From: Blastocystis sp. Blastoise
Taxonomy: Eukaryota; Protista; Bigyra: Opalinata
NCBI GenBank assembly: GCA_039096225.1
Contig: JBBPEB010000023.1
Coordinates: forward strand, 686,326-750,325
DNA length: 64,000 bases
Reading direction: 5' to 3'
The notes beneath the pieces were generated by a model. The model did not search any database, was not told where the DNA came from, and saw only the letters and a program-made list of their open reading frames with translations. Position 1 is the first letter of the stretch. The number at the start of each line of letters is the position of its first letter. The translations under genes were made by a program, and so were the position numbers. Positions 37,518 through 64,000 of the stretch are shown here, one piece after another.

Positions 37518-39312
37518 TTATCGACAAATAGAATAAAAATGAGTTTTATTAGTATGATGAGTATATAATAGTTTTGATTGTTTTATGGTTATTTTATTTT
37601 TATAAATTATATCAGCTTCATTAAAATGTTTTAATACATGCTTAGGATATATATTATTATATAAAGTAAGAAGACTCATAAAAACATCATCATTTTGAAA
37701 CAAATTATCCATATATGGAAATGTATATATATGTTTTCGAAGTATGTCTTTTGTATATAGAGTAAATGGACCATCAACAAAAGGTATTTTCCAAGGTAAT
37801 ATAAAATAAGGTTTTGACCATTTATCACGTAAATTAATATCAGGAGATGAATTTTTTATAATTCCCATATATGTTTTTCTTCTAGATCTTAATAATAGTT
37901 CATCAACTTCACTTGGATTTACACATATATCATCATCACCAATAATTACATTAGTAGTGGTTGTATTGGATATAATAAATAATTCTTCAATCATAAAATA
38001 TTTTAATGTGTTATTACCATAATGTTCAACTATATTTGTACCTATAATATCTTGATACATTTCAGATTCTTTATAAATATTTGAAAATAATGGATCTGAA
38101 CTATTTTTACTTACTACAAAATAAATTTTAAAATTAAATGCATATTTATGTTGATATTGACCCCAAGTATTTCGTATACCATCACGAATATCACGATTAT
38201 AATAAGTAGATTTTAAAAAATAAATTAATTTATAATGATCAAAAAGATCTTTTAATTCATCATAACGAGGTAATATATAAAATGTAAAACGAGTACCTAC
38301 AGGAAAAAAGAAGAAATTACTATAATAATCACGTGCATAAAAATCTATTCGTTTTCTTTCTATAGTTTCTTTTTGTTGATATAAATATTTAATAGTAGTA
38401 TTTGAATCATAAATTTGAATAGGATTATAAGGATGATAATATTCTTCATAATCTATATAGCTAATACCTGAAGGGGGTAGAACTATATATTGACCATATA
38501 CTATTGAATCTTCTATAAATGAAAAAGGTAAATGATTCTTTTGTTTTAAAGAATGTAATATATCTTTTGGATTCTTTTGAATAACATGTAATTTATGTTG
38601 TATCATTTTATACGTACATCTCCAAAATAATGTTTTAGAAGGATTTCTTAATTGTGTTGGATCACAATAATCTGGATATAATGGAATACTATAAGATTCG
38701 TAGATAGATTGAATTTTTGGAATAAATTGAATTGAAGAATTATAATTAGATATATTCTGAATATATCTTGAAGAAGGAAATGTATTTAGTGTTATTAATT
38801 CATAATTACTATGAACTTGAGTCTTATTAAAATAAAGTAGCTGACGAAGATGTTCAAAAGGACGTTGATATTTTGAATGAATAGAATCACTCATTTTTTT
38901 ATAATTCTTCTTTATAATATCTATGTTATATTATATATAAAAAATAGATTTATAGGATATACTGAGTGCATTATTTTGATTAATCCACGAAGATTCTTTA
39001 CTAGAACTATCATAATAATAGATTGAATGATCTGAAGATGATTTCGAAAATTTAGTTAATGTTTTGTGAGAAATATTTGAAGATAATACACCATGATACT
39101 CTATAGAAAAAGGAATTGAAAGAGATTGACAATTTATTGATCTGGAATGAATTCTAAATGCTTTCTTTATTTAAAATCATACGATCAGAGTATAAAGGGT
39201 TATTTGTGAAGGATAATGGATTTGTAAATTGAGTTGATTTCTTGATATTATATATAGAGATCATGAAGGCAATCATGCATATTATAAAAACATAATTCTT
39301 TTCTTTGAACAT
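37518..39312 (-). CDS. GT31 beta-1,3-galactosyltransferase-family protein, type II membrane
   Basis: Signal anchor MFKEKNYVFIICMIAFMISIY. Two tiny 5' introns (29 nt at 39154-39182 and about 41 nt). Catalytic exon with 'RDGIRNTWG', 'EHYGNNTLK', 'GDDDICVNP' and 'NDDVFM'. Confidence 0.85.
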
Positions 39313-39910
39313 AGCAGCAATATTCGCAGAAAATGAATTAAGAAATTATTTAGATAATCATTAATGTTTTGAATTTCTTCGTAATTGAATTGAAAAATCC
39401 CATGATTTTTATTCTTTTAAATTATTTTTCTAAATAAGGGATTTTTGCAAACACATTGTTCATTAAAGTGTTTAGATACATTGCAAATATATTGAAATAT
39501 CTAATTAATGATAAGAAATCTATAAAATAAAATAATAAAGAAAAAAATAAGAATGAGTATAGAATTTCACTTTAGAAATAGTTACTATCGAATTCTTATA
39601 GTTGATACAATATAGATTTCATAATTACTATTTTTAAAGATTTATATTAATTGATTTTCTTATTATTAAAAGGAAAAATAAAAATAAATGAAAATTTTTT
39701 TAAAAATATTTCCGAAAAATACTATTCTGGTTCTCTATTTTGAAGAATATACATTTTTACAGTGACTTTTGTAGTCAAATCATGGGAATTGTGAATGAAT
39801 TCAATAAATAAAATTTATACGGAATTCTTTTAGTAAATAGTTTTTTCTCGTATTATCGTTCTTTTTGCCTTTACATTCAAGGTGATATAGGTCATTTCTT
39901 TTTTCTAAAC

Positions 39911-41506
39911 ATGACTCTATCTTTGCTGAGTAAATTTCTATGGTTTTCAACTATTTTAGTGTTATGTTTTATTCAAAGCAAAACAATTGTAGAAGAACAT
40001 TCTATAGATTTAATTCATTCATCAAATTCAAGTCATACCGTACATATCATGATTATTATGTTTAAAAGTCTTTTTTTTTATAGTATAAAGATTTAGATCA
40101 TATACAAACACACACCAAGTATGTATTTATTATATAAAATGAAAATGAATAATCGAATTTCTAGAAAATGTTTTCACAAAGATGCTAATAATATAATTTA
40201 TCCTTCAGATTATTCTAGATTTTATCAGAATTCATTTGCAGAATATTGGGAATGGCTTTCTAAACAAAATACTTCGAATGTGTTACAATCAACAAATATC
40301 TTATTTCATACTTCTTATGAACCAAATATTGATTATTCTTTTATATTTAGATTTTCTAAAAAGAATAGATTATCTGATATAATTGATACTATACAAGATT
40401 TTCCTGATATTAGTTATTATTGGTTAAATAATTTTACAAAGATTCACAGACAATCCCCAGTATTATATGGTACATATTATATACAAAAGAAACTTTATGA
40501 TTATCAGAATTCATTTGATTGTTCTAAAGCTAAATATATTCTTGTTGGTGTTGCTATATCAGGTATTGGCTCTCATGTTCATGTAATGGGATCTTTATTA
40601 GCAGAAGCTATCAATCACAATCGAATATTAGTTATGATTGATAATAATGATTCTTATTGGATAGAAAAATCGATTTGTACAGAAAATTCATTATTATGTT
40701 ATTTTGAAAATATGAGTCAATGTCAATCTTATATAAAAAATACATATCAACAATTAAGATCTACTCAATATGTTATATCCAATCCTAAAAAGAATGATTT
40801 GAAAACATATGATAATGTTCAATATATATATTCAAATACACAATCTATTACTGTATATGAGTCTAAAAACACTATTCCTTATTTTGTTCAAGAATTTTGT
40901 GATGAATTATCTTTATCTTCTGAAGAATGCTTAGTTTATTGGAGAATACAAGCATCTACATTCATTTCTAGATTAAATAAGAAATTCAGTAGTGTTTTAA
41001 ATTCTCGTTTAAAATTAGATTGTATAAATTGTTTAGATTCTTATGATGTTAATATACATATACGTAGTGCAGATAAAAAGAATGAAATGATTATTCCTTC
41101 TCCTTTAGTATTTAATTATCCAATAAATATTATTCAAAAAATACTTAATAAAAATAAACTATCAATATATATAAATGGTGATAATGATGAAGATATAAAA
41201 ACAGTTGTACAATCTTCTAATAATATATTTATATATATATCTAAAGAACGAAGAGAAAATAAAGATGTATATAATATAATAAAAAAAGAAGATATTGTAG
41301 TTTATTCTTTTCTCAATTTAAGAGAATCATTGAAATCAAGTATTCTTATAGGTACTTATGAGAGTAATTGGATAAGATTGATGATTGAACTTAAATTGAC
41401 AATTGGCTATGGTAGTAAGAGTTTATTCTTTGAAGTTGGACATGGCAATTGCATTACATATATTGATTGCCATAATACAAAGAATACATTTAATCCTGTG
41501 TGGTAA
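39911..41506 (+). CDS. Alpha-1,6-fucosyltransferase-like protein (GT23/FUT8-NodZ clan)
   Basis: Signal exon 39911-40039, intron 40040-40096. Motifs 'DCSKAKY', 'SGIGSHVH', 'IHIRSADKKNE' (cf. FUT8 VHVRRTDK) and 'IGTYESNWIRLMIEL'. Confidence 0.7.
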
Positions 41507-44129
41507 AAACAAACATACATTTAATCAACTTTTATTTCTATCATTTAATTTCTTCTATTAATGTATCATGTATTAATATTTATATGATATTTTTATCTAG
41601 CTTTTATTTAGTATTTGTTTTTTCTATTTAATTTTATAATAATAGTTATTAAAAAGTTTATATCTTTTTTCTATATTCATCATGAATTTATAATAATTAT
41701 TTTTTATATACGATGGTTTTAGTATTAATAATTATTCTTGTATTGTTTAAAGGGTTCTATTTGTTTTTTTTATATATTTTTAAACATATGATTTATTTAT
41801 TAATCTAAAAAAGACGTAAAATCAGTATGAACATCTTATTTTGTATTTTTTATTATGACTAACTGAAAGAAATTACTTTTTTAAGTTGAAAATGAGTTGA
41901 TCTATATTTGAACTTTTTGTGCTTTAGAAACCATGGAAATTTAAGATTCATTTTTTGAACTATGGAATGAATGACGGTAGTGAATATATATATGAAATCA
42001 TTTAGTTTATATAGTTAAGAAATTATTAAAAAAACAATTCTATATATTATATTTAAGCTTATTAGATATAAAACTATTTAAAACATAAAGAAAAAATGAT
42101 TATTTGTAGCTTATTATAATATTAAATATTATTCAAATTGAAATTGAATATATTTTTTGAGTATCTTATAATTATGGTTATATATAGATCTATTTATATC
42201 GAATATTCGATTAGAATGTTTGTATCCATTATGTATTAAAGATATATTCTATTCCTTAGAAAGAGTAACAATGCGTCGTATATAATATAATACTATAATA
42301 TATTTATTATAGTATAATATAATTGGCCAGCTTCTATGAGCCCTTTTTTTATCATATGGAATTGTCGCCAACATTTGTAACAAAATATTTATTTTGTTAG
42401 ATATATAATTTTATATTTTTATTCATTCAACTTATATTCAGCAGAAAATGTCAATAATTTATTGTCATAATAACTATCACAAAAATGAGGAAATATGAAG
42501 AAAAACGAATCTTTATACTTGTCTTTTTTATTACAGAAATGAATAAAAAACTGAGAAAATTACTTTTTTTATGTCTGTATATCTTAGAATTACTTGATGA
42601 ATATTATTTTGTATATATTTTGGTATCAAGTTAGTAAATTGACATAAAATAAAGAAAAAATGTTCATTAAAATGGGAAAATCATGTGTGTTATATATTTT
42701 AAGAAATATATTGATATACTTATATATATCTATTTTTTTATTCATTTTTTTATTATTATATTAATTTATTAATTTATTTTCATGATTTCTAAATATTTCT
42801 TAATGCTTTTATGATATATTTTTATTGAAAGTATTTTTGCTATAAACTAGTTTTTTCTTCAATGTATTAATAATTGTAGCTAATTAAAAAAAACTCTTCA
42901 TTTATTCTTTTTATAGATTTAGATATAAAAAACATATAAAAATGAATAAAGAATAATAAAATGGTATTTTTATTTAATTCTATCATCTATAGCAGCATCT
43001 TTTTTTGTATTATTACTTTAAACACACATTTATTTTTGCTAAACAAATGTCTAGACCATTAAAGACCTATAGTTCATAGAACAGGATCTAAAATTGGTTT
43101 TTGTTTCATTTTTAGGAAATAAAAGATCACGAAAAATTTTGTTACATAATAAAAGTATATTTATATATTGAAAACATGTGAAAAAAGAAAATAATAATAT
43201 ATCTTTTTGTAAAAGATGACTTTTTAAAAGTATTTAAGTGACTATTTTTATCTTTTTGCATTTCAATTATCTTAGAAAGGATCAACTATCTGGGAGAATC
43301 TTTTTTTTATTTCTTTCTTTCTCAAAAAAAAATTAATAAATATATATTTTTGTGTTTTTTATTTGTTGAAACTTTTAAAGTTGATAATGATATTAGAGTT
43401 GTGATGTTATAATTAGATTTTCAAAATAGTATATTGAAAATGTTCTAATTATTATTTATATCACTTTGTGGTACTTTTAATTATTTCAAAGACATCACGG
43501 GTAAAAATAGCATTTTTATCCAATTTAAAAAAAGAATCTAAACTGTTTAAGTAAATGATATGAATAAGTATATTATTTAAAGCATTAGAATTTCCTTTAT
43601 TCATTTGATACAGGAAATGTATTTTTTTAAATAAATTTTTATGAAATTTTACAAAGTTTATTTATTTTTAAATCATAATTTTAAAAGCATAATCCATTTT
43701 TTCTTCATGAATACAAAATATAAAAAAAACAATAAAACATAGAGTTTTTATTATTAAATTATATTTTAATTGTTCAAACATCGAATAAGTTAAAAAAACT
43801 ATTAAAGATATTATAAATAAATAAATAAATAGATTAACTAATATGATTATTATAATTTTCTTATATAATAGCATGTATAATTATATATGTAGAACATATA
43901 TGTGTAATGTTACAAATATAAAGTGATTTTTTGTAAAAGATATTCTTGATTATTTAAAAAAATATATATATACAAAATATCTTTTCGTGTGACATCAATA
44001 TTTATTCTGATTAATCTTATTAATTCAGTTTTTTATCTATGTTTTTATGAAATTTTATCGTTTTTTTTTAATAATTTGATCGCATAAGCATTTTGTTTTA
44101 GCATATATTCTTGTCTTTAATGCTATATG

Positions 44130-44645
44130 TGACGTAAACATTTAATTCTTTATTATTATATGACTTAGCATTTAATTATTTATTATTAATGTGACGTCAA
44201 TATTTAATTATTTATTATTATATGACTCAGCATTTAATTCTTTATTATTGATGTGACGTAAACATTTAATTCTTTATTATTATATGACTCAGCATTTAAT
44301 TCTTTATTATTGATGTGACGTAAACATTTAATTCTTTATTATTATATGACTCAGCATTTAATTCTTTATTATTAATGTGACGTCAATATTTAATTCTTTA
44401 TTATTATATGACTCAGCATTTAATTCTTTATTATTGATGTGACGTCAATATTTAATTCTTTATTATTATATGACTCAGCATTTAATTCATAATTATTATA
44501 TGACTCAGCATTTAATTCTTTATTATTATATGACTCAGCATTTAATTCTTTATTATTAATGTGACGTAAACATTTTGTTCTTTATTATTATATGACTCAG
44601 CATTTAATTCGTTATTATTATATGACTCAGCATTTAATTATTTCC
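44130..44645 (+). repeat. Tandem array 1: 17 units, 30-31 bp period, alternating TGACGT(A/C)A and TGACTCA cores
   Basis: TGAC cores at 44130, 44161, 44192, 44223, 44254, 44285, 44316, 44347, 44378, 44409, 44440, 44471, 44501, 44531, 44562, 44593 and 44623. Spacer CATTTAATTCTTTATTATT. Confidence 0.95.
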
Positions 44646-47600
44646 TTTTTATGCATCAAATATTTTTTTCAGACATAATTTTTGTCACTAATTTTTGAAT
44701 ACTATTAGAATACATTATCCTTTATATGTATTTTTTAATATTTTTCGTAGTAAAAAATTTTTATAGTTTATCTATTCTTGGGATCAACTCGATTTTTCGA
44801 ATAGCATAATATTTTTATGATTACTTTTTGTTTTTTTAAATATATTAAACTAATTTAACCCTAAAACAGAAATTTTATGTGCTTATTGATATCACAGTAT
44901 TATTTATATCAGATAACTTCCTCTTTTGTGACGATTTCCATAACAATAAAAAACAATTGAATATAAAATATATATGTTTATTATTCGAAGGTTAAAAGAA
45001 TATCATAAATTTCTATTATATTTTCTGTGTGTTAATTAAACTTTAAAAGGTAGTGAACATTTTTATAAACAAGCTAAAAGTGAGAGTGAATCTGAAACCT
45101 ATGCTTAAGAAATTGATAATAATTATATATTTTTGATATTTATACTTATAATATAAAATTTAAGAAATTGATTTAATATATTTCATTGATTAACTGTATA
45201 TTTTGGATAATCATATCATACCAAATAACTCAACTGCTTCTTTCCATACTTTCTTTGAGTTTTAATTTTGTTTTTGTTTTCTGTTTTATCTATTGTTTTT
45301 TCTTTTGAAAATATTATGTTATTGTTGAACATAGCAAGATAAGAACAAAAGAAAGCATTCAAAATGTTCGATTATTCTTAAACAATTATGCACATAACAT
45401 TTATTATATATATATTTAGAATTTGTAAATAAATTTTTATATCATAAACATCTAAAAGCGAATATTTTCATATGTTTTTCTATTTCCATCTGAGATAGCT
45501 CTTAAATAATCATCAATGAATAATATATATAAAATAACATATATATATATCGTTTAAAAAATATATATAATCATTTATTTTCCTAATCACACACTCTTGA
45601 CATTTGAAAAGACTTAAATATTTTTATGTTTCTATCAAATGAATTAATCAATAATACCAAAATACCATATAGTAACATTTATATCAAAATAAACAGATAT
45701 ATAAAAAAAATTATTAAGTACATGTTTAAAATTGAATAATACAAAATATTTTCCGGAACAATGCTAATTTCTAGCTATTTTAATAATATATATTTTTTGT
45801 AAATTTTGCCCCATAATGGTCTACACCAATAAAATGTTCGTATTCAAAATATATAATTATTATTCTGGACAAGTAGAATTATTATATCAAGTTGATATAG
45901 GCACAAATTTATTAAAAGCAATCCAAATATTTATTATGATTAAACGCTTTATATAATGCTCAGAATTTTCATATTCATATAGTAAAAGCAAAGGCATTTA
46001 AATTATTATTAATAGCAGGCATAAAAAATATATGAATCAACATATTCATATATTCTTAGAAACTACATATTTATTCTAAAAGATATAAAATTCTCCATAA
46101 GCAAAAAATGGAATAGCTAACAATAGAGAATGATGAATACATATTAGTGATAAATGATTTTTTTAGAAAAATTCAAAAAGAATTAAAAACAAGTCTTTTA
46201 TTAAATGATAAATAAAAATAATGATGAAAACGTAGGTTTAGAGGATATTAAAGTATATAGTATAATAATATGAAATACAAACTTAATTCCAAAAAATAAC
46301 ATACTATAGAAATGTTATAAGAAATTAATAATGATATAATTTTTTTTGCTTAATATTAGTTTTTTAAATAGTTTAATTTTTTTAGAGTTCTGTTGTTTGA
46401 TATCATAAATTGATTATGAAAATATATAGCTTAAAAACTTATTTTAAAGTTACAGAAGATGTAGCAATGAGATCAATTTGAATTAGATTTTTATTTAATG
46501 TGTTGATTTGCTATTTCTTTTTATGAGTATTTATTGTATTACATCAATTATGTTATTTTATGGAAGAAACTCAACTTTTGTGGTAATTATAATTAAATAT
46601 TTGACTGCCACTATAAGATAAGTTTGATTGTATTAATACAAAAAAAAGAAGTTTTCCAAAATGTATTTTTATGTCAAATGCTAGATATAAGTCTCAAATA
46701 TTAGTTTTTTTATAGAGAGATTATCCAAACCAGAAAGGGGTAATAACATGTTTAAAAAGTAAAATATTTAGTTTATTTACAATAAAAACACAGCCTTTTT
46801 TGTTACTAGCTAAATATTTTTATTTTTTTTAGAGTATTGGTGAGTTTGGGTTTTTATATATTTTATTACATAAAAAAAATAGATTCTTAATATAAAAACA
46901 ATAAAAACTAACAATAATATAAGTGCTTGATAAAAAAATAGTTCTATTTCTATTATTTAAATATGTATCAAGTATTTTCTTGAATATTTAGATTAATTCT
47001 TTAACATATTTTTTATAATTTTTCTGCTTTTATATTAAATAAGAGAAAGTCACTTATAACCAATTTTAAATAAATGCTATCTTTGAGCTATATATGTGTA
47101 ATTGCATTGTATTGTAATAAACACTTCAAAAAGAAGAAAAATAAAAAACTCAAAATAATATATTTTCAAAATAATGCAAATATACTTGATATACATATTT
47201 ATACACGATTGAGACTTTAATTATATTTTTCTGTATTTCAATTCTTATATTTCAATAATGTATAAGCAATTTGAGTTAGTATTCATAAATATTTTTATAT
47301 ACACTACAGTTTAAGTATATATATATATATATATATATATATTCTAATGACTTTTATGTTGAGATTAGCAAATTAAACTATATACAATTGAAGGATAAAA
47401 CTAAAAAAAATGTCTAAATTATTGGTATTATTAAGCCATCTATTTATTTATATAAACATTATATGCCACTTAATTTTTTAAGAAAAATGATTGGATAAAC
47501 ATTTCGTTTTTGCCAGTATAATAAATTATAAAAAGTCCTTACAGATGTTCTCATATTTTTGTGAGCAGTGTAGAATGACAGCAGAAAACAGCCTATTTGA

Positions 47601-48239
47601 CAATGGAAAAACCAACAAATAGTGTCGAAAATGATGGAGATATTGTCATGCACGCGTCAATCATAGGTTGTGTTTAATATTAAAAAAGCTTATACATATG
47701 CTTTCTATTATATTACAAGCTATTTTAAAAATTATGCGTTTACAAAACACTTGGCTATAAATAATTTGCTGAAAATTTTTTTCTCCAAATTAGAATACCA
47801 TAAAAATATCGTTGTCACGTTTTAAAACTTATATATATATATCTATTTAATAAACAAATAACATTTAATGTTCATACATAACTATAGCTATGTTTTTAGT
47901 TCAAATAAGAAATTTTCTCTCCAAGACACACAAATTTTTTTTTATCGAAAATATATATTTTCTTCATAAAAATCTGAAATCGTTTTTGAATCTTTAAAAA
48001 ATTAGAATAGTTGCATAAAATTTCATATATATTATTTATAAATGTAACAACTTGTTATAAATACAAAAAAAATTATGTTTTTAATAATATATTGTTTATC
48101 GTTTAACTAAATCATTATATATATATATATTTACTAAAAAACTAACAAATTATATACAGCTTCAAAATCAATTATTATTTCATAAAAGGCTACTCTTTGT
48201 AATATTTTTTGACAAAATATTTTGTTTAAATATTGTATA

Positions 48240-48932
48240 ATGAACTATTCTTACAGAAGGTATGATAATAGTATTTATATCTATTATTACTTTTATGATT
48301 TATATTCTATTTAATTAATTTATTCATTATTCTTTAGTTTGGTATTCATTGTAATCTTGATTATAACATTTGTTCCAATAGTGACGAGAGTTTTTCAAGT
48401 TAATTTTTTTTTTAATTCTTTAGGTAAAAATTTTTCTTCTCATTATTTAAATAATTCTTTTTTAAATAAAACTGAATTCAAAATGAAAGTTTCACACAAC
48501 AATTTTCATCCATTTGTAATCAATTCAATCAATGAAACAATTTTTTTTCATCCTTCTCTTATAATTGTAATTAAAACAAAGAAGATAACAGAAAAAACAC
48601 TTGAATTATCATTATTGAATTCTATTCATATTAATCGTCAACAAATATTTATTATTCAAACAAATACTCAAAAAGAATATCAATATTTTCCTTATGAATC
48701 TACAATCTGTTCTAATATTTCATTTCCTTATTGTATTTACACAAATTATGATCAAACTGATAATTTTTCATTCTTTTTATCTATTTTTTATCCTTCAGAT
48801 TATATTTTATTTATAGATGAAGATCAATTAACTTTAGATATTAAAGAAAAATTAACTAATGAATGGCTTTTTAATGCTATTAATTCTATTGAAAATAATA
48901 ATATTAATTTATTTTCTTGTTCTTCTACAATT

Positions 48933-49007
<75 letters not shown>

Positions 49008-49172
49008 TTAAATGAGAATAATATACAATTAAATACTTGTTTATTAGTTAAACAAGGATTAATTAGAAAAATATTATCTTATACATCAATTAATAAAAAT
49101 ATTATGAATGTAATGGATTATATTCCTTATTTCTTTCAAATAGAAAAGAAAACTATGTTTTATGATTCATTT

Positions 49173-49205
<33 letters not shown>

Positions 49206-50072
49206 AAAATTATTCATCCTTCTATTCTTCCTCAAATATTTAAATGTATTTATAATAATGATAATAAAAGTGATAATTCACTTACTTTATTATTACCTAT
49301 ATATAAGAGAATAGCTTCTTTAAATGTACTAAATCTAATAGAAAATCAAACAAAGAAACCAGATATAATAGTAATATTACAAAATTTACATTATATAGAA
49401 TTTCCAAAAGAAGCATTTTTAAATCGTACTATGCCTACTTATTATATATGGTGTAGTAATTGGAATAGTAAATATCATATGAAAACATTTTTAGCTTCTA
49501 TATTTACTACAACATTTGCAATGACAACAGATGATGATTTTTATATTGATGATTATAATGCTATAAATAATATTCTAGATTTATTAAAGAAAAGAGAATG
49601 CATGTATGGTATTACAGGAGGATTAAATTGGAGTAATCTAAAAGGTAAAAAATTCTTAAACCTGAAAAGAACAGATTATATAGTTGATCATGCTGCAGTT
49701 ATAGTATTTTTACGACCAAGAATGTCAAAAATTAATATGAGATATAAACAAGCTACTTATGACTATGGTGAAGATATTAGCTTAGGTGCTATAAATTATT
49801 TAGAATGTAATACAACTAGTCATAGGAATAGCTTTCATACTCATAATCATTCAGGTGACCAATTTCGAACTTTTGATAAGAAAGATAATACGATGAATAC
49901 AAATAGTTATAAAAACATATCTCTCCCAAAATTTAAAAATTTATTCATTAAAATGAATTACGAACAAGTGTATAAATATTATATAAATATGGGATATAAA
50001 AGCTATTTCTACCGAATAAATAATGAAAAAGTTGAAAAAATTTATGATGGAAGGTTGCCTATTAAATACTAA
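48240..50072 (+). CDS. GT-A fold (GT2-like) glycosyltransferase, type II membrane; paralog A
   Basis: ATG at 48240, intron 48260-48337, hydrophobic anchor. Motifs 'LTLLLPIYKR', 'AMTTDDDFYI' (DxD) and 'YGEDISL'. Clearly similar to the genes at 57117 and 62075. Confidence 0.7.
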
Positions 50073-52203
50073 ATATTATTATTCTTCATAATTTGTGTTC
50101 TTAAATAGAATTAATAAGAATTATTCAAAACTATATTTTTACAAATATATTTTTTATGATGTTTCATATAACTTGATAAGCCTTCAATAATTTCCTTTTT
50201 ATTTATTTATTTATATAATTTTAAATTCGTTAAAACAAACTTCTTATCACACAAAATCTTAATATATATGATTCATAATTTTATGAAAACTTTGCTATGG
50301 TTATTTTGACTTTTATTCTGTATATTATAAAACAAAAAAAAATTATATAATTATGTATTCCAAATATTTTTTATAAAAATTGTTTTGATAAAATAGAAAT
50401 TGCATTTGTTTTACAAAATATAGAAATGATATTGTAAAAAAAAATCAAATAATTTATTGCACATATAATTTATTTATAATAATTTTACAATCATATATTT
50501 TTCTGTATAGTAAAAGAAAAGATTTAATTATTTTAGACTACTTGAAAAATATTTAATAATTTTTATTCTTGTAAAAAAAGTACTTATTTAGTATCACAAC
50601 ATTTTTATCGTTGTTTATTTTTATATTTCACACAATATTCAATATTTTAAAATGTATATAATTGCTTTTTCCTTGCAATATATATAATATATATAATATA
50701 TATATATACTATTATACTAGATCTCTTTTCTTAAGTTTTTTTTGTTCATGAATTGTCACATATATCTGTGTTATTTTTTATCAATAATTTAATGCTATTT
50801 TTTTATATTAATCCATATTAAATCTGACTTCAAATGACTTTTTGTGAAATTCATTGCAACTATCTAAAAATATAGGGAAGACGCTGATTAAAATTTTACT
50901 AAATAATGCTGAATATTTATTTCACCATAGGATACTAAGCTTATTTAAGATTGTTCATGTGCTTTTTAACAAAAACTATTAATTTTCTTTAAAAAAAATG
51001 AGTTTAAAAAAATGGTATACAAAAGAAATATTCTCAAAAACAATCAGCCAGAAACTAAGTCGGTATCATTTTTTTTTAAATTTTCTTTTAATATAGTGAT
51101 AAATGATTTTTTAACTCTATGTATTTCAATATTCTTTATTAGGATATATATATATATATATTTTATTTGATTTTTTTAACATTAATAGCTTAGAAATGTT
51201 GACATATATCAATTAAAAAGTGTCAAAAGTTTTTCAAATTATGTGTAGACATATTATAAAGCAAATGAACTTACTGGTAATGTTTATATCAAGCAAAAAA
51301 AAACATACAGTCTATTTTTCAATAGCAAAATTTAACAAATTTTTAACAAATTGAAAAAACAAAAATGTCAAAAGATACAAAAATCTGAAACTTGATTTTA
51401 AATTTTGTTTTACTTAAATAAAATGTATTTTTAATTTATTTTATTTCATGATATCTTTTTTATTTACGAAAAATATATTATGGTATATGTTATATTTCCT
51501 TTTCTTTATATGACTTAATTGATTTCTTTATTTTAGAATTAAATATTTTTATTTTCAAAAACTTATTGTATTTTAAACAAGACTTATATTCCAAATGATC
51601 CAATTAGATCAAAAATACATTTTGTATCAAGTTATTTTGCCAGTTTTATTTATTTATTTACTTTTAGTTAGATTATTAATTATTATTTATGGTGTTGTAT
51701 TTCTTTTGTATTGGATCAACTATTGTGAATGTATATTTTTATTAATTAATATAATCAATAACTTGACAACATTATATGATATCTGATAAGAAATAACAAA
51801 AAAAATCAGTCTTTTTTATATGACTGAATAGAATATAAATGAAAATTTGATTACCAAAAGAATAAAAGGTGTAACAATTTCTATGATATTTACTCTCCAG
51901 CAAAAAAACATAGAGAAAGACTGTGATATTTTAATTAAAAAAGAAAAAAAAATCATTACTTATCCTATAGCAAATTTTCTATGGAAAAAGAATAAAAATA
52001 TAAAATAATTATTATAAATTTATATTTTTATATAAGGAATAAATGAAATAAAATCATGAATTTTGTTATATTTTTTTAGACTTTTACATATATAATACAT
52101 ACATATTTAAATATAAGAAACAAAAGAGTGGTGGCTATTTTTATTCTTTTTTCTATAAAAATATTTTTGATTTTATTATTTATTCATAGATATATTAATA
52201 GCA

Positions 52204-53783
52204 ATGTTTTATCTTTATTATGTTCTATTTTTTGGAATAATGCTATTTTTATTATATTTTCATTTTAATATGCAAATGTATTCTAACAAGAAAATGACAA
52301 TGAATACTTTTGCGCAATTAGAACATAGTAACTTATCATATTACGTAACTATGAGTGTTAAAAATACAAAACACAATTCATCTGAATATATAGAATCATT
52401 TCGACAATATTCAAATGACGATTTTCATTTTCAAGGTATTGATTCAAATAATAAGATTTTATTTCTTATATGAAACTATTATTATAATTGTATTAATCTA
52501 TTATTATTTTTTTTATATTTTTAGAATTCAAAAATTATTATGAATGGGATTATGATGTAATGCAGTATTATATTGATCCTAATAATACTTCATTTGAATC
52601 TTTTTTTGAATACTATAAGACAGTTCAAACAAGATGTGAGAACAAAACATTATCTAGAAATATTATTGTTTTTGAACCTACCACCTCTGGAATGGGTAAT
52701 AAGCTTTTAGGTTTATCATTAGCTATGTACTTTGCTATGATGACTAATAGCCACTTTATGAGTATGTAATTATATAATGTAATTGAATTTTTTTTTTTTA
52801 ATTATATTTCTTATATATTCTATATTTTGATCCTACTATTACTAAAGTTGTTTTATTTAAAAAATGTTTATAAATATAGTCTGTAATTGGCCTTCTTTTC
52901 CATTCTATTTCAATTTATCATTTCCTATAACTGTTACAGGTTGTAAAAGTATACATAATAATTATTAATATTATATATATATATAACTTTTTAATAATAA
53001 TTAGATGAAATTTGATTTCTATATATAGAATTAAACATTTCTAAAACTATATACTATACATCTCCATGTATAAATCATGGCAATGCTATTTTCCCTCCTT
53101 TATCTACATTATTTAATACTTCTTTAACAAGAATAACAATAAATTGTGGTGTAATCGATAGAATTCAATTGAGTAATCATATGAAAATGTTCCTTAATCT
53201 ATATAATATTAATAGTAAAGAAAATAATCGTGTATTTATTAGGAGTAGAGTTTTACATAATTTTTTAAATTATATGATATATCCAAGTAAGTATGTAGAA
53301 GATTCTATTAATGAGAAATATAAATCTTTTTCTTCTTATGATACAATTGGTATTCACTTACGTTTTGGGAAATATTCAGATTTTAATAAAACCAAAGATA
53401 AAAATGATGTATTCCTAATTCCTTCAGATATTGATTATTTTATTTCAGTAGCAAAAATAATATCGAAAAGAATAAAAAGTAATAAAATAAAGTGGTATAT
53501 CTCCTCAGACAGCACATTTTATAAGAATCAATTACAGCAACAATATCCAAACCAAGTTATTACTCTTAATACCACAGTTATTCATTCTGGACTTTCCTCT
53601 ATAACTGGCTATTCTAATGGTGTTGTTGATTCTATTTCAGAAATGTATTTGTTGTCCAAATGCAAATATATTATTCGTTATTCAGAAAGTTCATTCAGTT
53701 CTATTTCTTGTTCTCTTAAAGATGATGAAAATTGTGTCATTGTATATAAGAATAAAAAAACAAATAAATTAACATTTAAATAG
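52204..53783 (+). CDS. Fucosyltransferase-like protein (GT11/GT37/NodZ-type GT-B fold)
   Basis: Signal anchor. 'SGMGNKLLGL', 'IGIHLRFG' (motif I), 'WYISSDS' (motif II) and 'EMYLLSKCKYII...SSFS' (motif III). About 4 exons. Confidence 0.8.
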
Positions 53784-56019
53784 AATATTTTTTTATTTTA
53801 AAGATGATTGCGTATTTTTAGTCATAAATTTATAGATAGATTTGTACATTTTTTTTATAAATTATTATAGAGTTTTCTTATTATTATTTTTCTGGTATGA
53901 TTTTTGATAATTTACAAATATCTATTTTTATTTATTCTTAAACAATAATGACTTTCCGATATTTTTAACATTCTACCTTATTATGATCATTCTTTTATTT
54001 TTATATCTTGATTATTTGAGCTATTTTTTCTATTATTTATTAACTCACTAATTCTAGTATTGCTTTTATTGAATTTAGTAACAAAAAAATAATAACACTT
54101 GGTAAATGAATCTAGTCATAATTTATAGTATTCTTATTTATTAATAAATTTAGTTTTTTAATTATATAATTGTTATTAATCTTAATAAAATGAAACTCAA
54201 TTATTTGAAAAATAGTTAGGGAAATGCTAGTATAATTTCTAAGATATTTAAGAAGATTTTTAATATGTAATATTTTTATTAACTCAATAAAGAATAAAAA
54301 ATTAATTATATAAATGTTTAAATTAGTAAAATATAATTTTAGATTATTATATATAATAAACTTAAGAAAACAATATTCTAGGTATTTAGAAGTTAAATTA
54401 GATAAATAATATTTTAAAATTACTGAAAGATCTGGGAGTAGTATCACGTCAGCAATACATTATTTGATTTTTATGTGGATTCCAGAAATTTCTAAAGAAT
54501 TTTTGGGTAGTGGTTTTTGCATTATTTAAAAGTCCCCAAAAAAATATATTCGTCTCTTGTATCGAAAAAAAAATGTGTATTTTATATACAATGCCTTTCA
54601 AACTGTTTGTGACACTTGATGTGACTGTCACAATAAGACAATTTCAATCAGAATTGATATGACTGATCATTAAAAAATTTTATTTCATTGTTAACACTTC
54701 TCAAGAGTGTCACAAATAATGTGGCACTTACTATCAAAAAAGAAACTCATAAAAGAGACAACTTAAGAATATAAATATAAACATAAAGATGTTCTACATT
54801 CAAGTATAGTTTTTAAATAGTACATTTATAAATATAAATATCTAATTTCTTATTATAAATATTTAATAAAATAACATTTAAAAAGTAAGATAAAAAATAT
54901 AAACTATTATAATAAATAAATATAAAAATAGAATAATTTAATTACAATAATAAAAAATAATTATTATAAAACTATTATAAATACACAGTTAAATTTACAA
55001 ATAGAACATAAAAAGTACTTTAGAGAATCAGAAATCCTTTTATGCTACAAAAAAGATTTATTAATCAAATAAAGCGTATTTAAAAAATAATAATATACAA
55101 AAAGTATTTTTGATCTGTTAGGCCATTTAGAATGACATACAATTCAATTTCATAATAGAGAGAGTTACATATCTTTAAAAGACCTGATACCTAAATAAAT
55201 AAGTGAATAAAGTAAAATAGAATACAAAAGATTCAACAAGCCTGAAATGTAGACAATTTACCTAAATAGAAAATGATATAAACAAATTCAATATATAATC
55301 ATTCATCAAGTTCATAAAAAAAAAGTAAAATACCTGGTTTATATTTTTGTTGTTTTCTAGAAAAGATTTTGTTTTAATAAAAATTGACTGTCTAACTTTT
55401 CTTTATGTTTATTAATAAACATAATAAAATAAGTCATTCTATTTATATCATAAGTCTATATAGTCTATTAAATTCATTTTGATACCTTTTTATAAAAAAA
55501 AAACAACATTTCCAAAACACTAATATTAAGAAAAACAGATCAGAAACGAGCACTTTTTATCAAATAAAGACTTTATTGATAGAATATAAATACACAAAAT
55601 TCATATTAACTCTATACGAGAAGAATAAAGAAGAATAGAAAAAGTATTATCGACTTTTATTTATTTTTCTTATATTTTGGATAAATTCCTTCTCTAAACC
55701 ATTTCTTAGAAGATCATTTTTGTAAGAAATATTATTAGACTATATTATAAAATCAACCAATCAAAACTTGTAAATAGACCACCCTGCCTCATATTGTTAA
55801 TTGGGAAACTATATGAAGTAAGAAATACTAATATGAAAAAATGTGTAAGTGCCAATTATAAAATAGTATGAAATGTTTATTAAATAAAAGAATTCAAAAA
55901 TAAATATCACTCCTAATGATATAAACCAAATCAGTATTGATTGATTATTTCATAAGATGTCACTTATATATATATATATATAATACATAACATCAACAAT
56001 TATTGTAAATATTTTTTGC

Positions 56020-56700
56020 TATGTCAGTATTATATTCATTTATTTATTATGTGACATCAGCATAATATTCCTATTTAATTCTGACATAAGCAAAAAATGC
56101 ATATTATTTTGCTGACATCAACATTATATTAGTCTATTTATTAGTGACATCAGTATTATATTAGTCTGTTTATTAGTGACGTCAGTATTATATTCATTTA
56201 TTTATTGTTGACGTCAACATTATATTATTCTATTTATTATGTGACGTCAATATTATATTAGTCTATTTATTGGTGACATCAACATTATATTAGTCTATTT
56301 ATTAGTGACATCAGTATTTTATTCATTTATTTATTGTTGACGTCAGTATTATACTATTCTATTTATTAGTGACGTCAACATTATATTAGTCTATTTATTA
56401 GTGACATCAGTATTTTATTCATTTATTTATTGTTGACGTCAGTATTATATTTCTATTTAATGCTGATATAAGCATTATATTATATATTATTTTGCTGACA
56501 TCAGTATTATATTTATTTATTTATTATGTGACGTCAGTATTATATTTATTTATTTATTATGTGACGTCAACATTAAATAATTCTATTTATTAGTGACGTC
56601 AATATTATATTATTCTATTTATTAGTGACATCAGTATTTTATTCATTTATTTATTAGTGACGTCAGTATTATATTCATTTATTTATTAATGACATCAGCA
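56020..56700 (+). repeat. Tandem array 2: about 21 units, about 32 bp period, TGACGTCA/TGACATCA cores
   Basis: Cores at 56052, 56082, 56113, 56145, 56177, 56209, 56242, 56274, 56306, 56338, 56370, 56402, 56434, 56464 (degenerate), 56496, 56529, 56562, 56594, 56626, 56658 and 56690. Confidence 0.95.
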
Positions 56701-57116
56701 TATATTTTTGTTGATATCTATAGTTTTACAAATCTTTGAATAATAGAACATACAAACATTTTGTATAATTATTTTTAATAGAATGACACAAAATATCAAA
56801 AAAATATGATTATTGTTTTAAAAACATCATTCTGTTCCTTTTTAGGTTTCAATTATCTAAATTTTATTTCTTTATTATTTATATCAAAAAAATCACCAAA
56901 ATTATGTAAATAAAAATTATATTTATTAAGAATTGAAAGGAATTATTTCATAAAACCATTTAATTACTAAATCTATATATGACAAATATTGGTGATACAA
57001 AACTAATGTTCCTTTTATACTATTATACCTTTCAAAGCAACCAGTTTTGCATACAATATCAAACACAATAAAATAAACTTAGAATAATTTGAAAATATTA
57101 ATACTAAGGACGATAT

Positions 57117-58822
57117 TTAAAAACTATATTTACCATCATATATATTTTTTACAGTAATATTACGAACTTTATAATTATATGGAACAAATCCAATTGATAC
57201 ATAATAATGATAGAGTTTATGATAATCTAAGAATTGAATTTTTTGAAGAGTGGATTCACTAGTTAGACGAATATCTTTATATGTTTTTAACTCTGATTTT
57301 TTCTGATTAATCCAGTATTTTGATTTGAATTGATCCTTGTTAGTATCTTTTGTAGGAATATCAATGACATAACTTTTTGTTCCACATTCTATATTATTTG
57401 TTACACTAAAACCAACATCTTCTCCACTAGAATATGTAACTACTTTATATCTAAGAAATATTTTTGCTTTTTCGGGAGTAAAAAAGTATATACATCCACC
57501 ATGATCAAATGATCCATCTTCATTTTTCATTTCTTTTAATGGCTTATAATTAAAATCTTTTAAATAATTAGCTCCATATTTGGCATATATAGCATTATTA
57601 TTGATATTTAACAATGATACTATATTTTGAAAAATGTCTTTTGATTGAATAAAATGATCATCATCATTACTAACAACATATTTTGTATCAAAAATAGAAG
57701 AAGTAAACAATCTAGCATGATATTTCATATTCCAATTTGGAGACCATATATAATATACAGGAAATAAGGAATTAGAAAAAACAAAATCAGGTATTTCCAT
57801 ATAATGAAGACTTTGCTGAAATATTACATAACTTGGAAGAAATGTTTGAATTGAAAAACAATCAATCATTCTTTCAGCTGTATTTCTTTTAAACATAGGA
57901 ATTATTACAGAAATTGTATCTGGTATTGATATATCTGTATAATTACAAGTAAATGATTGTATATCAGATTTAGGTAATTTCCTGTTATAATAAGATTTTC
58001 TTAAGAAATTATTTATTTTAATATTTTGTTTCTGATCTTTTAAATAAGAATAAATAGTATTCATTATTGAAGAAGATTTAATATTTATTGTTGTATATGT
58101 TAATAATTTACGAATCCATTTTTGTTTTATTATTAAACATCCTGATAATGATTTATTATCATTATTTTCTGATATTATACAAGAAAATAAATCGATTTGA
58201 TTGTTTTCTAATGAATATATTGTTTCATCTAACCAATTTGATGTCATTTGATTCTGGATTTGAGTATTAATTTCATTTTCATTAATATAAAATACATAAT
58301 CTTCTTCATAATAAATAGATAACATGAAAGCATAATGATCTAAATCATCATAATTTTGAAAAATACAATAAGGAAATGAAAAATCATTACAAATTGTATT
58401 TTTATAATTAATAGATGTAAAATTATTGTTTTTATCTGTTCGAATGATAAATATTTGATCAAATAATGATGTTCCATTATAAAATGTAGTAATATCTAAA
58501 GTATTTGTAGTAATATTGTTAGTTTGAATGACTAATGCTATTTTCTTTTCAAGCTTCACTGATTGAAAACTATACAGTTATTATAGATAAAATAATGATA
58601 CTTTTCTTTGGAATTCTGACTATGTAAATTATTTAGTATTATTTTATTTGCATTGTGTACTATATATAATAATTACTTATGACGCAGAATCTTTACACTT
58701 AACATTTGATGAAAAAGGTTTAAATATAACACTGCTGATGATTATATTTATTATTTCACATAGTAATAATAGCCTATACATTCTAATTGTGTTATATAGA
58801 TTAAATACCATAAGATGTACAT
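57117..58822 (-). CDS. GT-A fold (GT2-like) glycosyltransferase; paralog B
   Basis: Long exon 57117-58567 with 'ISVIIPMFKR', 'VVSNDDDHFI' and 'SGEDVGF'. Small 5' exons, including an 18-nt micro-exon at 58602-58619, can be spliced in frame from ATG 58822 to give a hydrophobic N-terminus. Confidence 0.7.
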
Positions 58823-59252
58823 ATTATTTTGTTTAATTTTAAAAACAATAATTTTTATTCCTTTACCAGATAATATAAAGAATCATCGAAAAGGACACTC
58901 AAAAACATGACTATTTCTTACATATTTCTTACAAATATTTTAATATTTTCATCATTTTGTTATTATTTCTATTATTGTTTTATATATAATTTTTGTATGC
59001 TGATAATATAGTTCACTGTATGGTCAATTTTTAAATTTATAAAAAATAAATAAGCCAATAAATGCTAATAATCACTTATGTTTTAATTCCTTAGTTATTA
59101 ACATCTTGTTATAAAAAAGGAATAAACAATATTAGAGAAAATAAATTTAAAGTTAGTAGTATTAATAAAAAAAGATTAACTATATAGTAAGCAAACAAAA
59201 AGTAAAATGTTTATGAATGACACCGAATCTTGAAACTGTTTTTTTTTTCATA

Positions 59253-61239
<1,987 letters not shown>

Positions 61240-62074
61240 AGCTTATGTAGCATATAAACAAAATTATTTACAGCTATAAGAAAATATCAGAAAAAAAATA
61301 TATACTTGAAATTTTATCGCCATATTATTTTACACATTGATCGAAATAAAAAACCATAAGTATAAATTTCATGCAAATTTAATTAAAAATCGATGAGAAA
61401 GACAGCGGATACAATAAATAATATGTAATTTACAGTTATATACAAAACTTTATTACAATCTTATGTTTTTAATTTTTTTATGCATTCATTAGATATTCTT
61501 GAAAAATTCAAATAAAATAATCTTATAGATATATGGTGTATAAAACTTACTTTTGTTGTGAAATAACGAGTAAGATGGTTTGCTAATTTAGTATATTGAT
61601 TCTTTTGTTATAAGAAATTTATGTATATTTATTATCATTATTATAAAATGCTAATAAAATATCGATCAAGTAATCATATAATTTTACTACTAATAATAAT
61701 ATTATTATTATTTTAAAACTTTAAGATCTATTTAAGAAAGACAAATTTCACAAACACTAAAATATTTTACATATTTTTAAAGAATTCAATTCAAATATTA
61801 AAATATATACCAGCTATTATTTACATAATTTTTCATGAGTTTTTCTATAGTCAATAATGGTTATTCTGACAAAATGATAATATCATTAATGTGTAAAACA
61901 AATAGTAAATAGCATCAACAAAAATTTTTGCATGATGATTTATTATAACAAATAAACAATTATCAGTATTATTACATATTATTAACATTAGAATTGATAT
62001 ATGTTGAAGAGCAAAATGTAATATAATAATTAATAGAAAATGAGAAAAGATAAAAAGTAAAAAAAAAAATAAAT

Positions 62075-62951
62075 CTAAAATTTATATTTACCATCACCAA
62101 CTATTTTTTGGGTCAAGTTAAGAATCTTATAGTTTAATGGAATAAATCCAATTGACTTATAATAATGATAAACTTCCTCATATGATTTATATTTAATCAA
62201 ATCTAGAGTAGATATACTTGAAAGTCGAATATTTTTATATGTTTTGAAATCAGAGGGTTTTTGAGTAATCCAATAACGAGAACGATGTTCATCTTTATTT
62301 GTATCTTTTAAGGGGAATTCAATTGTACGACTCTTTGTTCCACATTCTATATTATTTGTTGTACAAAATCCTATATCTTCACCATATGAAAAAGTATATG
62401 GTTTATATCTTAGATAAATCTTTGTTTTTCTAGGAGAAAAGAAATATATACAACCAACATGATCATAACTATTCTCATTACTTTTATACTCTTTAAGTGG
62501 TTTATTCATAGGGTCTCTTGTATTAAAGGTTCCATATCTTCCGTATATAGCATTATCTTTATTTAAAACAGATGTCGCATTTTTAAATGTGTCACCAGAT
62601 TGAAAGAATTGATCATCATCAATGGTAACAACATATTTTGTATCAAAAATTGATGAGAAATAAAGTTTGGCATGATATTTCATATTCCAATTTGGAGACC
62701 ATATATAATATACAGGAAATAAGGAATTATTGAAAATAGAATCAGGTATTTCTATATAATGGAGACTTTGTTGAAATATAACATAACTTGGAAGAAATGT
62801 TTGAATGGAAATTGCTTTATATAATAAATAATAATTACTTCGTTTAAACATAGGAATTATTACAGAAATACTGTCATTTTGTTTTAGTGGATCATTGTCA
62901 CAAATGAAGGATTCAATTTGAATATTTTTCATTAAAAAATGATGATTTTTT
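62075..62951 (-). pseudogene. 5'-truncated GT-A glycosyltransferase (paralog C), cut by the terminal repeat
   Basis: Strongly similar to the C-terminal 60% of the 57117 gene. It lacks the anchor and N-terminal domain. The frame stays open (L-K-N-H-H-F-L-M...) right up to the repeat junction at about 62952. Confidence 0.75.
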
Positions 62952-64000
62952 AGGCCAGGGCCAGGGCCAGGGGGCCAGGGCCAGGGCCAGGCCAGGGCCA
63001 GGGCCAGGCCAGGCCAGGGCCAGGGCCAGGCCAGGCCAGGCCAGGGCCAGGGCCAGGGCCAGGGCCAGGCCAGGGCCAGGGCCAGGGCCAGGCCAGGCCA
63101 GGGCCAGGCCAGGCCAGGGCCAGGGCCAGGCCAGGCCAGGCCAGGGCCAGGGCCAGGGCCAGGGGCCAGGGCCAGGCCAGGGCCAGGCCAGGCCAGGCGG
63201 GCCAGGGCCAGGGCCAGGGCCAGGGCCAGGCCAGGCCAGGGCCAGGGCCAGGGCCAGGGCCAGGGCCAGGGCCAGGCCAGGCCAGGCCAGGGCCAGGCCA
63301 GGCCAGGCCAGGGCCAGGGCCAGGGCCAGGGCCAGGGCCAGGCCAGGGCCAGGCCAGGCCAGGGCCAGGGCCAGGGCCAGGGGCCAGGCCAGGGCCAGGC
63401 CAGGGCCAGGCCAGGCCAGGCCAGGCCAGGGCCAGGCCAGGCCAGGGCCAGGCCAGGGCCAGGGCCAGGGCCAGGGCCAGGGCCAGGCCAGGGCCAGGCC
63501 AGGCCAGGGCCAGGCCAGGGCCAGGCCAGGCCAGGCCAGGCCAGGGCCAGGGCCAGGCCAGGGCCAGGGCCAGGCCAGGCCAGGCCAGGCCAGGGCCAGG
63601 GCCAGGGCCAGGGCCAGGGCCAGGCCAGGGCCAGGCCAGGCCAGGGCCAGGGCCAGGGCCAGGGCCAGGGCCAGGGCCAGGGCCAGGGCCAGGCCAGGCC
63701 AGGCCAGGCCAGGGCCAGGCCAGGCCAGGCCAGGCCAGGCCAGGCCAGGCCAGGGCCAGGCCAGGGCCAGGCCAGGCCAGGCCAGGCCAGGCCAGGCCAG
63801 GCCAGGCCAGGCCAGGCCAGGCCAGGCCAGGGCCAGGCCAGGGCCAGGCCAGGCCAGGCCAGGGCCAGGCCAGGCCAGGCCAGGGCCAGGCCAGGCCAGG
63901 CCAGGCCAGGGCCAGGCCAGGCCAGGGCCAGGCCAGGGCCAGGCCAGGCCAGGGCCAGGCCAGGCCAGGCCAGGCCAGGCCAGGGCCAGGGCCAGGCCAG
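62952..64000 (+). repeat. Terminal G-rich repeat (CCAGGG/CCAGG)n, probably a telomere
   Basis: About 1.05 kb of mixed 6-mer and 5-mer units with the G-rich strand running 5'->3' to the window end, following a gene-sparse multigene-family region. Confidence 0.8.

Follow-up and report, generated by a model that had tools for sequence, protein, structure and literature searches.

The right-hand end of contig C32 (JBBPEB010000023.1) of Blastocystis sp. 'Blastoise' carries a cluster of seven glycosyltransferase-like genes from five paralog families directly under its telomere, and we consider it probable that this end is best explained as a patchwork of subtelomeric duplications that lost its outer part in a terminal deletion and was healed by a new telomere. 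The window analysed here is the 64,000-nucleotide stretch C32:686326-750325, the last base of which coincides with the contig end; positions given without a contig name refer to this stretch. The genome was obtained from the Russian-tortoise isolate Rus-B (PMC10690189), and its assembly comprises 34 contigs and 33.3 Mb with a guanine-cytosine (GC) content of about 20-23%. Between 37518 and 62932, the combination of Pfam, PDB, ESM-Atlas and paralogy searches recognised the following seven genes and no other, with evidence that varies by gene. This agrees with an initial annotation of the window, which had described all recognisable genes of this region as glycosyltransferases.

37518-39345, minus strand: GT31 gene (beta-1,3-galactosyl- or N-acetylglucosaminyl (GlcNAc)-transferase-like), with a main exon at 37518-38894 that contains DDD and presumptive further pieces up to about 39345.
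39911-41506, plus strand: FUT8-like gene (GT23/O-FucT superfamily), with a large open reading frame (ORF) at 40121-41506 and a presumptive upstream piece.
48339-50072, plus strand: GT-A paralog of the 'C13-type' subfamily according to its place in the tree, with an in-frame (ATA)24 tract that encodes a poly-Asn linker.
52204-53783, plus strand: NodZ-like fucosyltransferase gene (GT23 clan), probably with three exons (52204-52470, 52497-52766 and 53016-53783, given as ORF pieces).
57117-58559, minus strand: full-length GT-A paralog of the terminal subfamily, with a public model of 493 aa (WA158_007945).
59256-61242, minus strand: GT61-like gene, multi-exon and tentative (PF04577 match below threshold), with a likely intron that contains (TA)54 (60228-60335).
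62075-62932, minus strand: truncated GT-A paralog, an open frame of 285 aa with the C-terminal GT64-like domain only, in which the DDD and GEDI motifs are retained.

The multi-family cluster is real and statistically exceptional. We mapped the five families genome-wide, which gave about 94 loci (12-22 for each family). When these loci were placed at random 20,000 times, neither five families nor seven loci ever fell within 26 kb (0/20,000; P < 5e-5), and four families did so in 0.1% of the placements. The window is also the sole site in the genome where at least three of the five families occur inside 30 kb. The count of about five families in the initial annotation holds for paralog families, but at the level of CAZy it comes down to about four groups, as the NodZ-like gene falls in GT23.

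A comparison with the remaining chromosome ends gave a different picture for the cluster as a whole and for one of its families. The outermost 30 kb of the 14 telomere-capped ends add up to 1.3% of the genome; in these regions, members of the five families were found at the window's own end and at none of the 13 others, so that the glycosyltransferase enrichment at other chromosome ends which the initial annotation had suggested looking for is absent. The GT31, Pfam-GT61, FUT8-like and NodZ-like loci are scattered internally. The GT-A family is the sole one with an end bias: 13 of its 20 loci lie at most 120 kb from a contig end (21.5% expected), and all six regions that harbour its youngest, terminal subfamily are terminal (the ends of C32, C21, C16 and C8, and the starts of C16 and C14). 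The description of this region as a subtelomeric multi-family island was thus right in that the chromosome end is real, the cluster exceptional and one family spread among contig-terminal regions, and unsupported for the four families that are dispersed internally. Profiles for O-FucT, GT8 and GT10 had no matches in the genome, the GT2 profile matched about six loci, all of them internal, and a scan with the tyrosine-recombinase profile PF00589 gave no telomere-proximal match.

The contig terminates in a repeat that at first sight differs from every known telomere of this genome.

62952-64000, plus strand: telomere, printed as (CCAGGG/CCAGG)n; the underlying repeat is (CCCTAA)n, miscalled in nanopore data on the opposite strand.

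In the outermost 1.5 kb of both ends of all 34 contigs, CCCTAA was present at four starts and TTAGGG at nine ends, and the odd repeat was confined to C32. TTAGGG is the telomere of Blastocystis ST1 as well (PMC5608401). A nanopore error that turns CCCTAA into CCCTGG has been documented by Tan et al. 2022 (PMC9414165), and the CCAGGG seen here is its exact reverse complement. For Rus-B, an R9 flow cell, the basecaller guppy 5.0.16 and the assembler Flye were used (PMC10690189), so that the generation of flow cell and basecaller also matches, and we found no difference from the error repeat of Tan et al. Because the repeat is the reverse complement of the documented miscall and the chemistry matches, a genuine telomere in the right orientation is present here, and its letters are an artefact: the end of C32 is a natural right-hand chromosome end with an ordinary TTAGGG telomere. 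A novel telomere without T was considered and rejected, given TTAGGG at the 13 other ends, the documented miscall and the matching chemistry; the 'T-less' repeat arose in basecalling, and it would be a mistake to list it as a new telomere motif. The same miscall is found once more at C22:67025-67814, where a 0.8-kb (CCCTGG/CCTGG)n tract that terminates in ...CCTAAACC lies 67 kb inside a contig of 1.26 Mb; this internal tract is either a chimeric assembly join or an interstitial telomere.

The first telomere repeat (62952) starts 20 bp from the ATG of the truncated GT-A copy; a telomere-truncated copy had been listed in the initial annotation. This copy aligns with residues 200-480 of the 57117 protein at 63% identity, which means that the N-terminal 200 residues are gone and the whole catalytic domain is retained, and in the tree it is sister to the clade of the 57117 gene and its C21 and C16 relatives. 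A tandem telomere-associated repeat is common to the starts of C4 and C26 and to the ends of C13 and C16, and partly to the end of C29. Among the ends with visible telomere-adjacent sequence, it is absent from the C32 end, the C17 start and the C3 end. Because the telomere abuts a truncated gene and the telomere-associated repeat is missing at C32, this end can be read as a terminal deletion, in which a chromosome break inside the gene would have been healed by de novo telomere addition. The position of the copy points in the same direction: since the other copies of the terminal subfamily sit 15-115 kb inward from contig ends, a copy right at the telomere is best explained by deletion. Chromosome breaks that fall inside genes and are healed by a new telomere are known, for example from subtelomeric deletions in Plasmodium falciparum and as neotelomeres (PMC11293586). 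There, as here, the ORF is cut short directly at the telomere and lacks the telomere-associated repeat that normally follows; unlike there, the repeat letters are miscalled in our case and the junction is known from the assembly alone.

The DNA between the genes contains repeats that recur elsewhere in the genome next to members of the GT-A family. The two motif arrays of the initial annotation (the minisatellites below, with periods of 62 and 32 bp) were confirmed. The glycosyltransferase relics it had placed between the genes were not: none was detected in the intergenic DNA of the cluster by tblastn, blastp or family profile, and only a dispersed 1-kb repeat was found.

44127-44643, no strand assigned: minisatellite 1, with a 62-bp higher-order unit that contains TGACGTCA and TGACTCA.
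50939-51327, minus strand: partial inverted copy of the 1-kb repeat, 3.4 kb upstream of the copy at 54768-55802 and matching the same genomic copies in reverse orientation.
54768-55802, no strand assigned: dispersed non-coding repeat, about 1 kb long, of which the genome holds at least 17 copies (72-75% identity).
56023-56706, no strand assigned: minisatellite 2, in which a 32-bp unit with the core GTGACGTCAG / TGACATCA is repeated about 21 times, 0.4 kb downstream of the 57117 gene.

Array 1 has relatives with 77-79% identity at C16:30565 and C21:1135053; at both sites the array follows a GT-A paralog on its downstream side, at a distance of about 3.3 kb. TGACGTCA occurs 13 times where 0.13 would be expected. 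Arrays of the 32-bp GTGACGTCAG type are present at six other sites; five of these lie 0.4-3.4 kb 3' of a GT-A copy of the terminal subfamily, and the sixth lies 8 kb from the C4 end. The order of gene, array and repeat is found again at C16:2099850-2104065. Because this order and the downstream placement recur, the arrays are part of the duplication unit. The 1-kb dispersed repeat may be a non-autonomous mobile element. Array 1 lies in a stretch of 6.8 kb (41507-48338) that holds no ORF longer than 70 aa and whose sole genomic paralog is the array itself; compared with the median intergenic length reported for this lineage, the gap is about ten times as long.

Combinations of genes recur as well. 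The GT-A and NodZ-like genes, 1.2 kb apart, are paired again at C19:846566-850488, and GT-A and FUT8-like genes, 4.4 kb apart, at C21:1059987-1067137. In a DNA self-search, the 57117 gene had relatives at C16 and C21 with 79-86% identity, and the 48339 gene matched C13:248346-249812 with 81-93% identity. Two patches stand out with 93% identity from paralogs whose remaining sequence is about 81-86% identical: 48547-48922 versus C13:248346-248721, and 57157-57446 versus C14:91271-91558. To judge from their sequence, these two patches may be gene-conversion tracts. The C14 copy at 91271-91558 is a fragment that carries stop codons. The paralogs are old: the ectopic recombination that the initial annotation had proposed is not borne out as a frequent or recent process, with the best paralogs at 79-86% DNA identity and only these two short patches at 93%. 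Subtelomeric multigene families that are spread by ectopic recombination are familiar from Plasmodium (var/rif) and yeast (MAL/SUC/FLO). Paralogs in terminal regions, flanking repeats, pseudogenes and truncated copies are found likewise at the end described here; however, its copies are 14-40% diverged without near-identical blocks, and they encode enzymes rather than surface antigens or adhesins.

Under the explanation that we prefer, a break would have occurred inside a glycosyltransferase gene, after which a TTAGGG telomere would have been added de novo. The 25 kb inward of this break would have been assembled by segmental duplication from five glycosyltransferase families that are expanded in the genome. 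The two-domain GT-A family would have multiplied preferentially in contig-terminal regions, moving as a unit made up of the gene, the downstream 32-bp TGACGTCA minisatellite and the 1-kb repeat. The secretory pathway would be the most likely place of action of the encoded enzymes, with fucose-, galactose- and N-acetylhexosamine (HexNAc)-containing glycans of the surface coat or of secreted glycoproteins as their substrates.

The GT-A family contributes three paralogous ORFs to the cluster (48339-50072, 57117-58559 and 62075-62932), which are 32-63% identical, in line with the three GT-A paralogs of the initial annotation. The 48339 and 57117 proteins share 32% identity across 505 residues. The 480-aa ORF at 57117-58559 gave a 100% match to the hypothetical protein WA158_007945 in a word search. 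None of the three window proteins has a Pfam match of its own. A profile search of 1.8 billion representatives returned 217 relatives, the distant ones with GT2, GT2_3 or GT64 domains. Among 56 distant relatives, PF09258 (GT64) was matched in two and PF00535 in nine, and one C21 paralog matched PF00535 at 23.7 bits. Membership of GT64 as judged by sequence (PF09258) is thus not seen for the window proteins.

With a 56-sequence alignment from the representative search as input, the AlphaFold model of the 57117 protein reached a predicted local distance difference test (pLDDT) score of 90.7 and a predicted template modelling (pTM) score of 0.92, compared with a pLDDT of 39 for an input of eight paralogs. 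The predicted structure consists of two tandem GT-A-like domains and as a whole protein matches heparosan synthase 2 (PmHS2), chondroitin polymerase (K4CP) and LH3, which likewise have two such domains in tandem. Its C-terminal domain matched EXTL2 with a Z score of 18.9 (root-mean-square deviation (rmsd) 3.0 Å, 218 residues, 14% identity) and the GT64 domain of EXT2 with Z scores of 17.8-17.9; over the EXTL2 and EXT2 matches the rmsd was about 3 Å across 211-218 residues. GT27 N-acetylgalactosamine (GalNAc)-transferases scored lower against the same domain (Z about 15). The DDD motif is invariant across the 56 relatives, and the DXD of the N-terminal domain varies by copy (DED, DEN or NEN). 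In the model, the C-terminal domain of the GT-A family is thus predicted to have the GT64/EXTL2 fold with a DXD. It superposes on EXTL2 and EXT2 and has the DXD (as DDD) in common with the GT64 enzymes EXTL2 and EXT1-EXT2, but the identity is only 14% and the window proteins have no Pfam GT64 match; any GT64-type activity is putative. Relatives occur in Histomonas meleagridis and on gut-metagenome contigs with eukaryotic neighbours (one of them from pig gut). The two-domain GT64-like family is thereby patchily distributed across unrelated gut protists, a stramenopile and a parabasalid, and its transfer among gut eukaryotes is possible.

The other four genes of the cluster belong to families with different degrees of support. 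The spliced gene models (GT31, FUT8-like, NodZ-like and GT61-like) were searched exon by exon and not as joined proteins. The main GT31 exon scored 63.6 bits against PF01762 (cut-off 23) and has the DDD (DXD) motif, and the best PDB sequence matches were to B3GALT5 (1.7e-9) and B3GNT2. With a profile score over the curated cut-off and a DXD, the gene at 37518-38894 can be assigned to GT31, a family with about 20 mainly internal loci genome-wide. It is divergent from the FUT8-like gene, the two lying head to head across a gap of about 1.2 kb (38894-40121), and this gap may be a shared bidirectional promoter. The NodZ-like ORF at 53169-53783 scored 34.5 bits against PF05830 (cut-off 28.3) over profile positions 145-288 and contains an HxR motif; PDB matches to FUT8 and NodZ were weak (E about 0.02). 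The profile score over the curated cut-off argues for a GT23/NodZ-type fucosyltransferase at 52204-53783 in place of the 'GT11/37-like' label given to it initially. There are about 20 related loci in the genome, with a DNA-level paralog on C19.

For the FUT8-like ORF (40121-41506) there was no Pfam match at E <= 0.1, and no PDB sequence match even with a two-sequence profile. In the ESM-Atlas its feature score was 0.96, and the template modelling (TM) score of its model to FUT8_N_cat clusters was 0.62-0.65. The nearest paralog, WA158_005440 at C21:1065812 (59% amino-acid identity), lies 4.4 kb from the GT-A copy at about 1.06 Mb of C21. The last exon of the GT61-like gene matched PF04577 at 13.7 bits (cut-off 27; E 0.076), a lower bound given the exon-by-exon search, so that the 'GT61' label of the initial annotation falls short of the cut-off even though the match, at profile positions 108-136/137, is to the correct terminal motif. 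Membership of GT61 was rejected at the curated cut-off, and a genome-wide Pfam GT61 scan found 19 other loci and not this gene. A scripted scan found in-frame GT..AG introns for all tested junctions except that of pieces 4 to 5; because these two pieces are in one frame, an intron of about 120 nt across (TA)54 is likely. The gene, which has a paralog at C2:765238-766773, may be intact on the strength of these reading frames.

The initial annotation had described the enzymes as type II membrane proteins. Neither the GT-A nor the FUT8-like proteins have an N-terminal hydrophobic segment in their public models; distant relatives possess one. Hydrophobic ORF pieces are present upstream of each gene, but because 22% of intergenic ORF pieces contain such a segment by chance in this AT-rich DNA, they are weak evidence for an anchor.

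Several points weigh against the explanation by duplication and a healed deletion. Because four of the five families are otherwise dispersed, duplication alone does not explain the five-family cluster, and the linkage may be partly selected. The healed break is read from assembled sequence and nothing else. The FUT8-like assignment is weak, as it is drawn from ESM-Atlas features and structure only, and the GT61-like assignment by profile is weak as well. A Golgi location of the enzymes would follow from family precedent, and their signal anchors are putative.

Alternatively, the region would be a functional cluster for glycan biosynthesis, in which the families are kept together for sequential action on one lineage-specific glycan and are co-regulated, for example by a divergent promoter and by TGACGTCA arrays as putative basic leucine zipper (bZIP) enhancers. 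The presence of five families in 25 kb (P < 5e-5) is consistent with this, as are the GT31 and FUT8-like genes in their head-to-head arrangement and the renewed adjacency of GT-A with a NodZ-like gene at C19 and with a FUT8-like gene at C21. Outside the window, however, cross-family pairs within 6.5 kb are at chance level (3 observed versus 1.4 expected, P = 0.16), and the recurring pairs are explicable by segment duplication. We therefore regard a functional cluster as rather unlikely.

The initial annotation had proposed a candidate contingency locus, in which telomere-position silencing and ectopic recombination switch and reshuffle the glycosyltransferases and so produce clones with different surface glycans. 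The cluster does sit directly under the telomere, one of its families is common to contig-terminal regions, and the two 93% patches in paralogs of 81-86% identity are possibly conversion tracts. Fucose and GlcNAc also occur in the surface coat of Blastocystis. Against this, members of the five families are missing within 30 kb of all other telomeric ends, four families are internal and dispersed, and the extreme-end position is probably a by-product of the terminal deletion. Because the paralogs are 14-40% diverged, exchange is neither frequent nor recent. A frameshift-prone coding repeat is lacking, since (ATA)24 is in frame and (TA)54 is probably intronic. Altogether, we consider a contingency locus improbable, and give equally little weight to its more specific form, a variably expressed glycan-diversification locus with telomere-proximal silencing, sporadic exchange of sequence with the terminal copies on C21 and C16, and TGACGTCA arrays that would serve as putative bZIP-bound regulatory or recombination elements.

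In Leishmania, the SCG/SCA side-chain glycosyltransferase families are telomeric and modify a surface glycoconjugate. Glycosyltransferase paralogs near telomeres, of Golgi type there and presumably here, are common to both cases, but in Leishmania one family is found at many telomeres, whereas in the window five families are found at one end without a known link to a defined glycan. The lipooligosaccharide and lipopolysaccharide loci of Neisseria, Haemophilus and Campylobacter are phase-variable via homopolymeric or short-repeat tracts. They resemble the present cluster as groups of multi-family glycosyltransferases that decorate the surface (a role that would be presumed here), and differ from it in that their switching tracts lie in coding sequence, where none was found in our case.

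An assembly artefact would be a further alternative: chimeric nanopore reads would have fused the telomere tract to an internal gene, or the assembly would show a minority deletion variant of the culture, and the region would then not be a genuine end. The miscalled bases of the tract were not corrected by short-read polishing, and the identical tract inside C22 indicates that the assembler can embed such sequence. We nevertheless consider an artefact very unlikely, as the orientation is right for a right-hand end, the 1-kb tract terminates the contig, and long-read polishing, repeated four times, left the consensus in place. A laterally acquired or giant-virus-derived island, to which the Atlas clusters closest to the GT-A and FUT8-like proteins, largely viral ones, and the patchy range of the GT-A family (Blastocystis, Histomonas, gut metagenomes) might point, is the least credible of all, since the GC of the 25-kb terminal region is the same as in the rest of the window with no compositional island, the exon structure is of spliceosomal type, paralogs of every family are numerous and scattered over the genome, and the genes that directly precede 37.5 kb are ordinary housekeeping genes (for an ARM-repeat protein, the Rpb2-like second-largest subunit of RNA polymerase and a short-chain dehydrogenase).

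Some further observations concern the assembly and the window at large. C4, C5 and C22 terminate in one common sequence, C14, C20 and C33 terminate in a second, and C8 and C32 begin with a third; because these contig-terminal sequences are shared, the assembly breaks at dispersed repeats. The end of C27 is the 5' end of the small-subunit ribosomal RNA. An Rfam search of the window gave zero matches.

Neither telomeres nor glycosyltransferases come up in the genome paper (PMC10690189), and nothing has so far been published on the subtelomere organisation or the glycosyltransferase repertoires of Blastocystis. If the healed deletion is read correctly, the end of C32 would document a naturally occurring case in which a chromosome was healed within a gene. 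The GT-A proteins represent an uncharacterised two-domain GT64-like family that is common to Histomonas and other gut eukaryotes and for which a confident model is now available. Should the cluster be a site of variation after all, clonal lineages would display different fucose, galactose or HexNAc epitopes on their coat, which would be a eukaryotic, enzyme-based counterpart of the bacterial phase-variable glycosyltransferase loci and a new route of surface diversification in a very common gut eukaryote. The cluster itself is statistically solid, and lends itself to tests of co-expression and of a part in building the surface coat.

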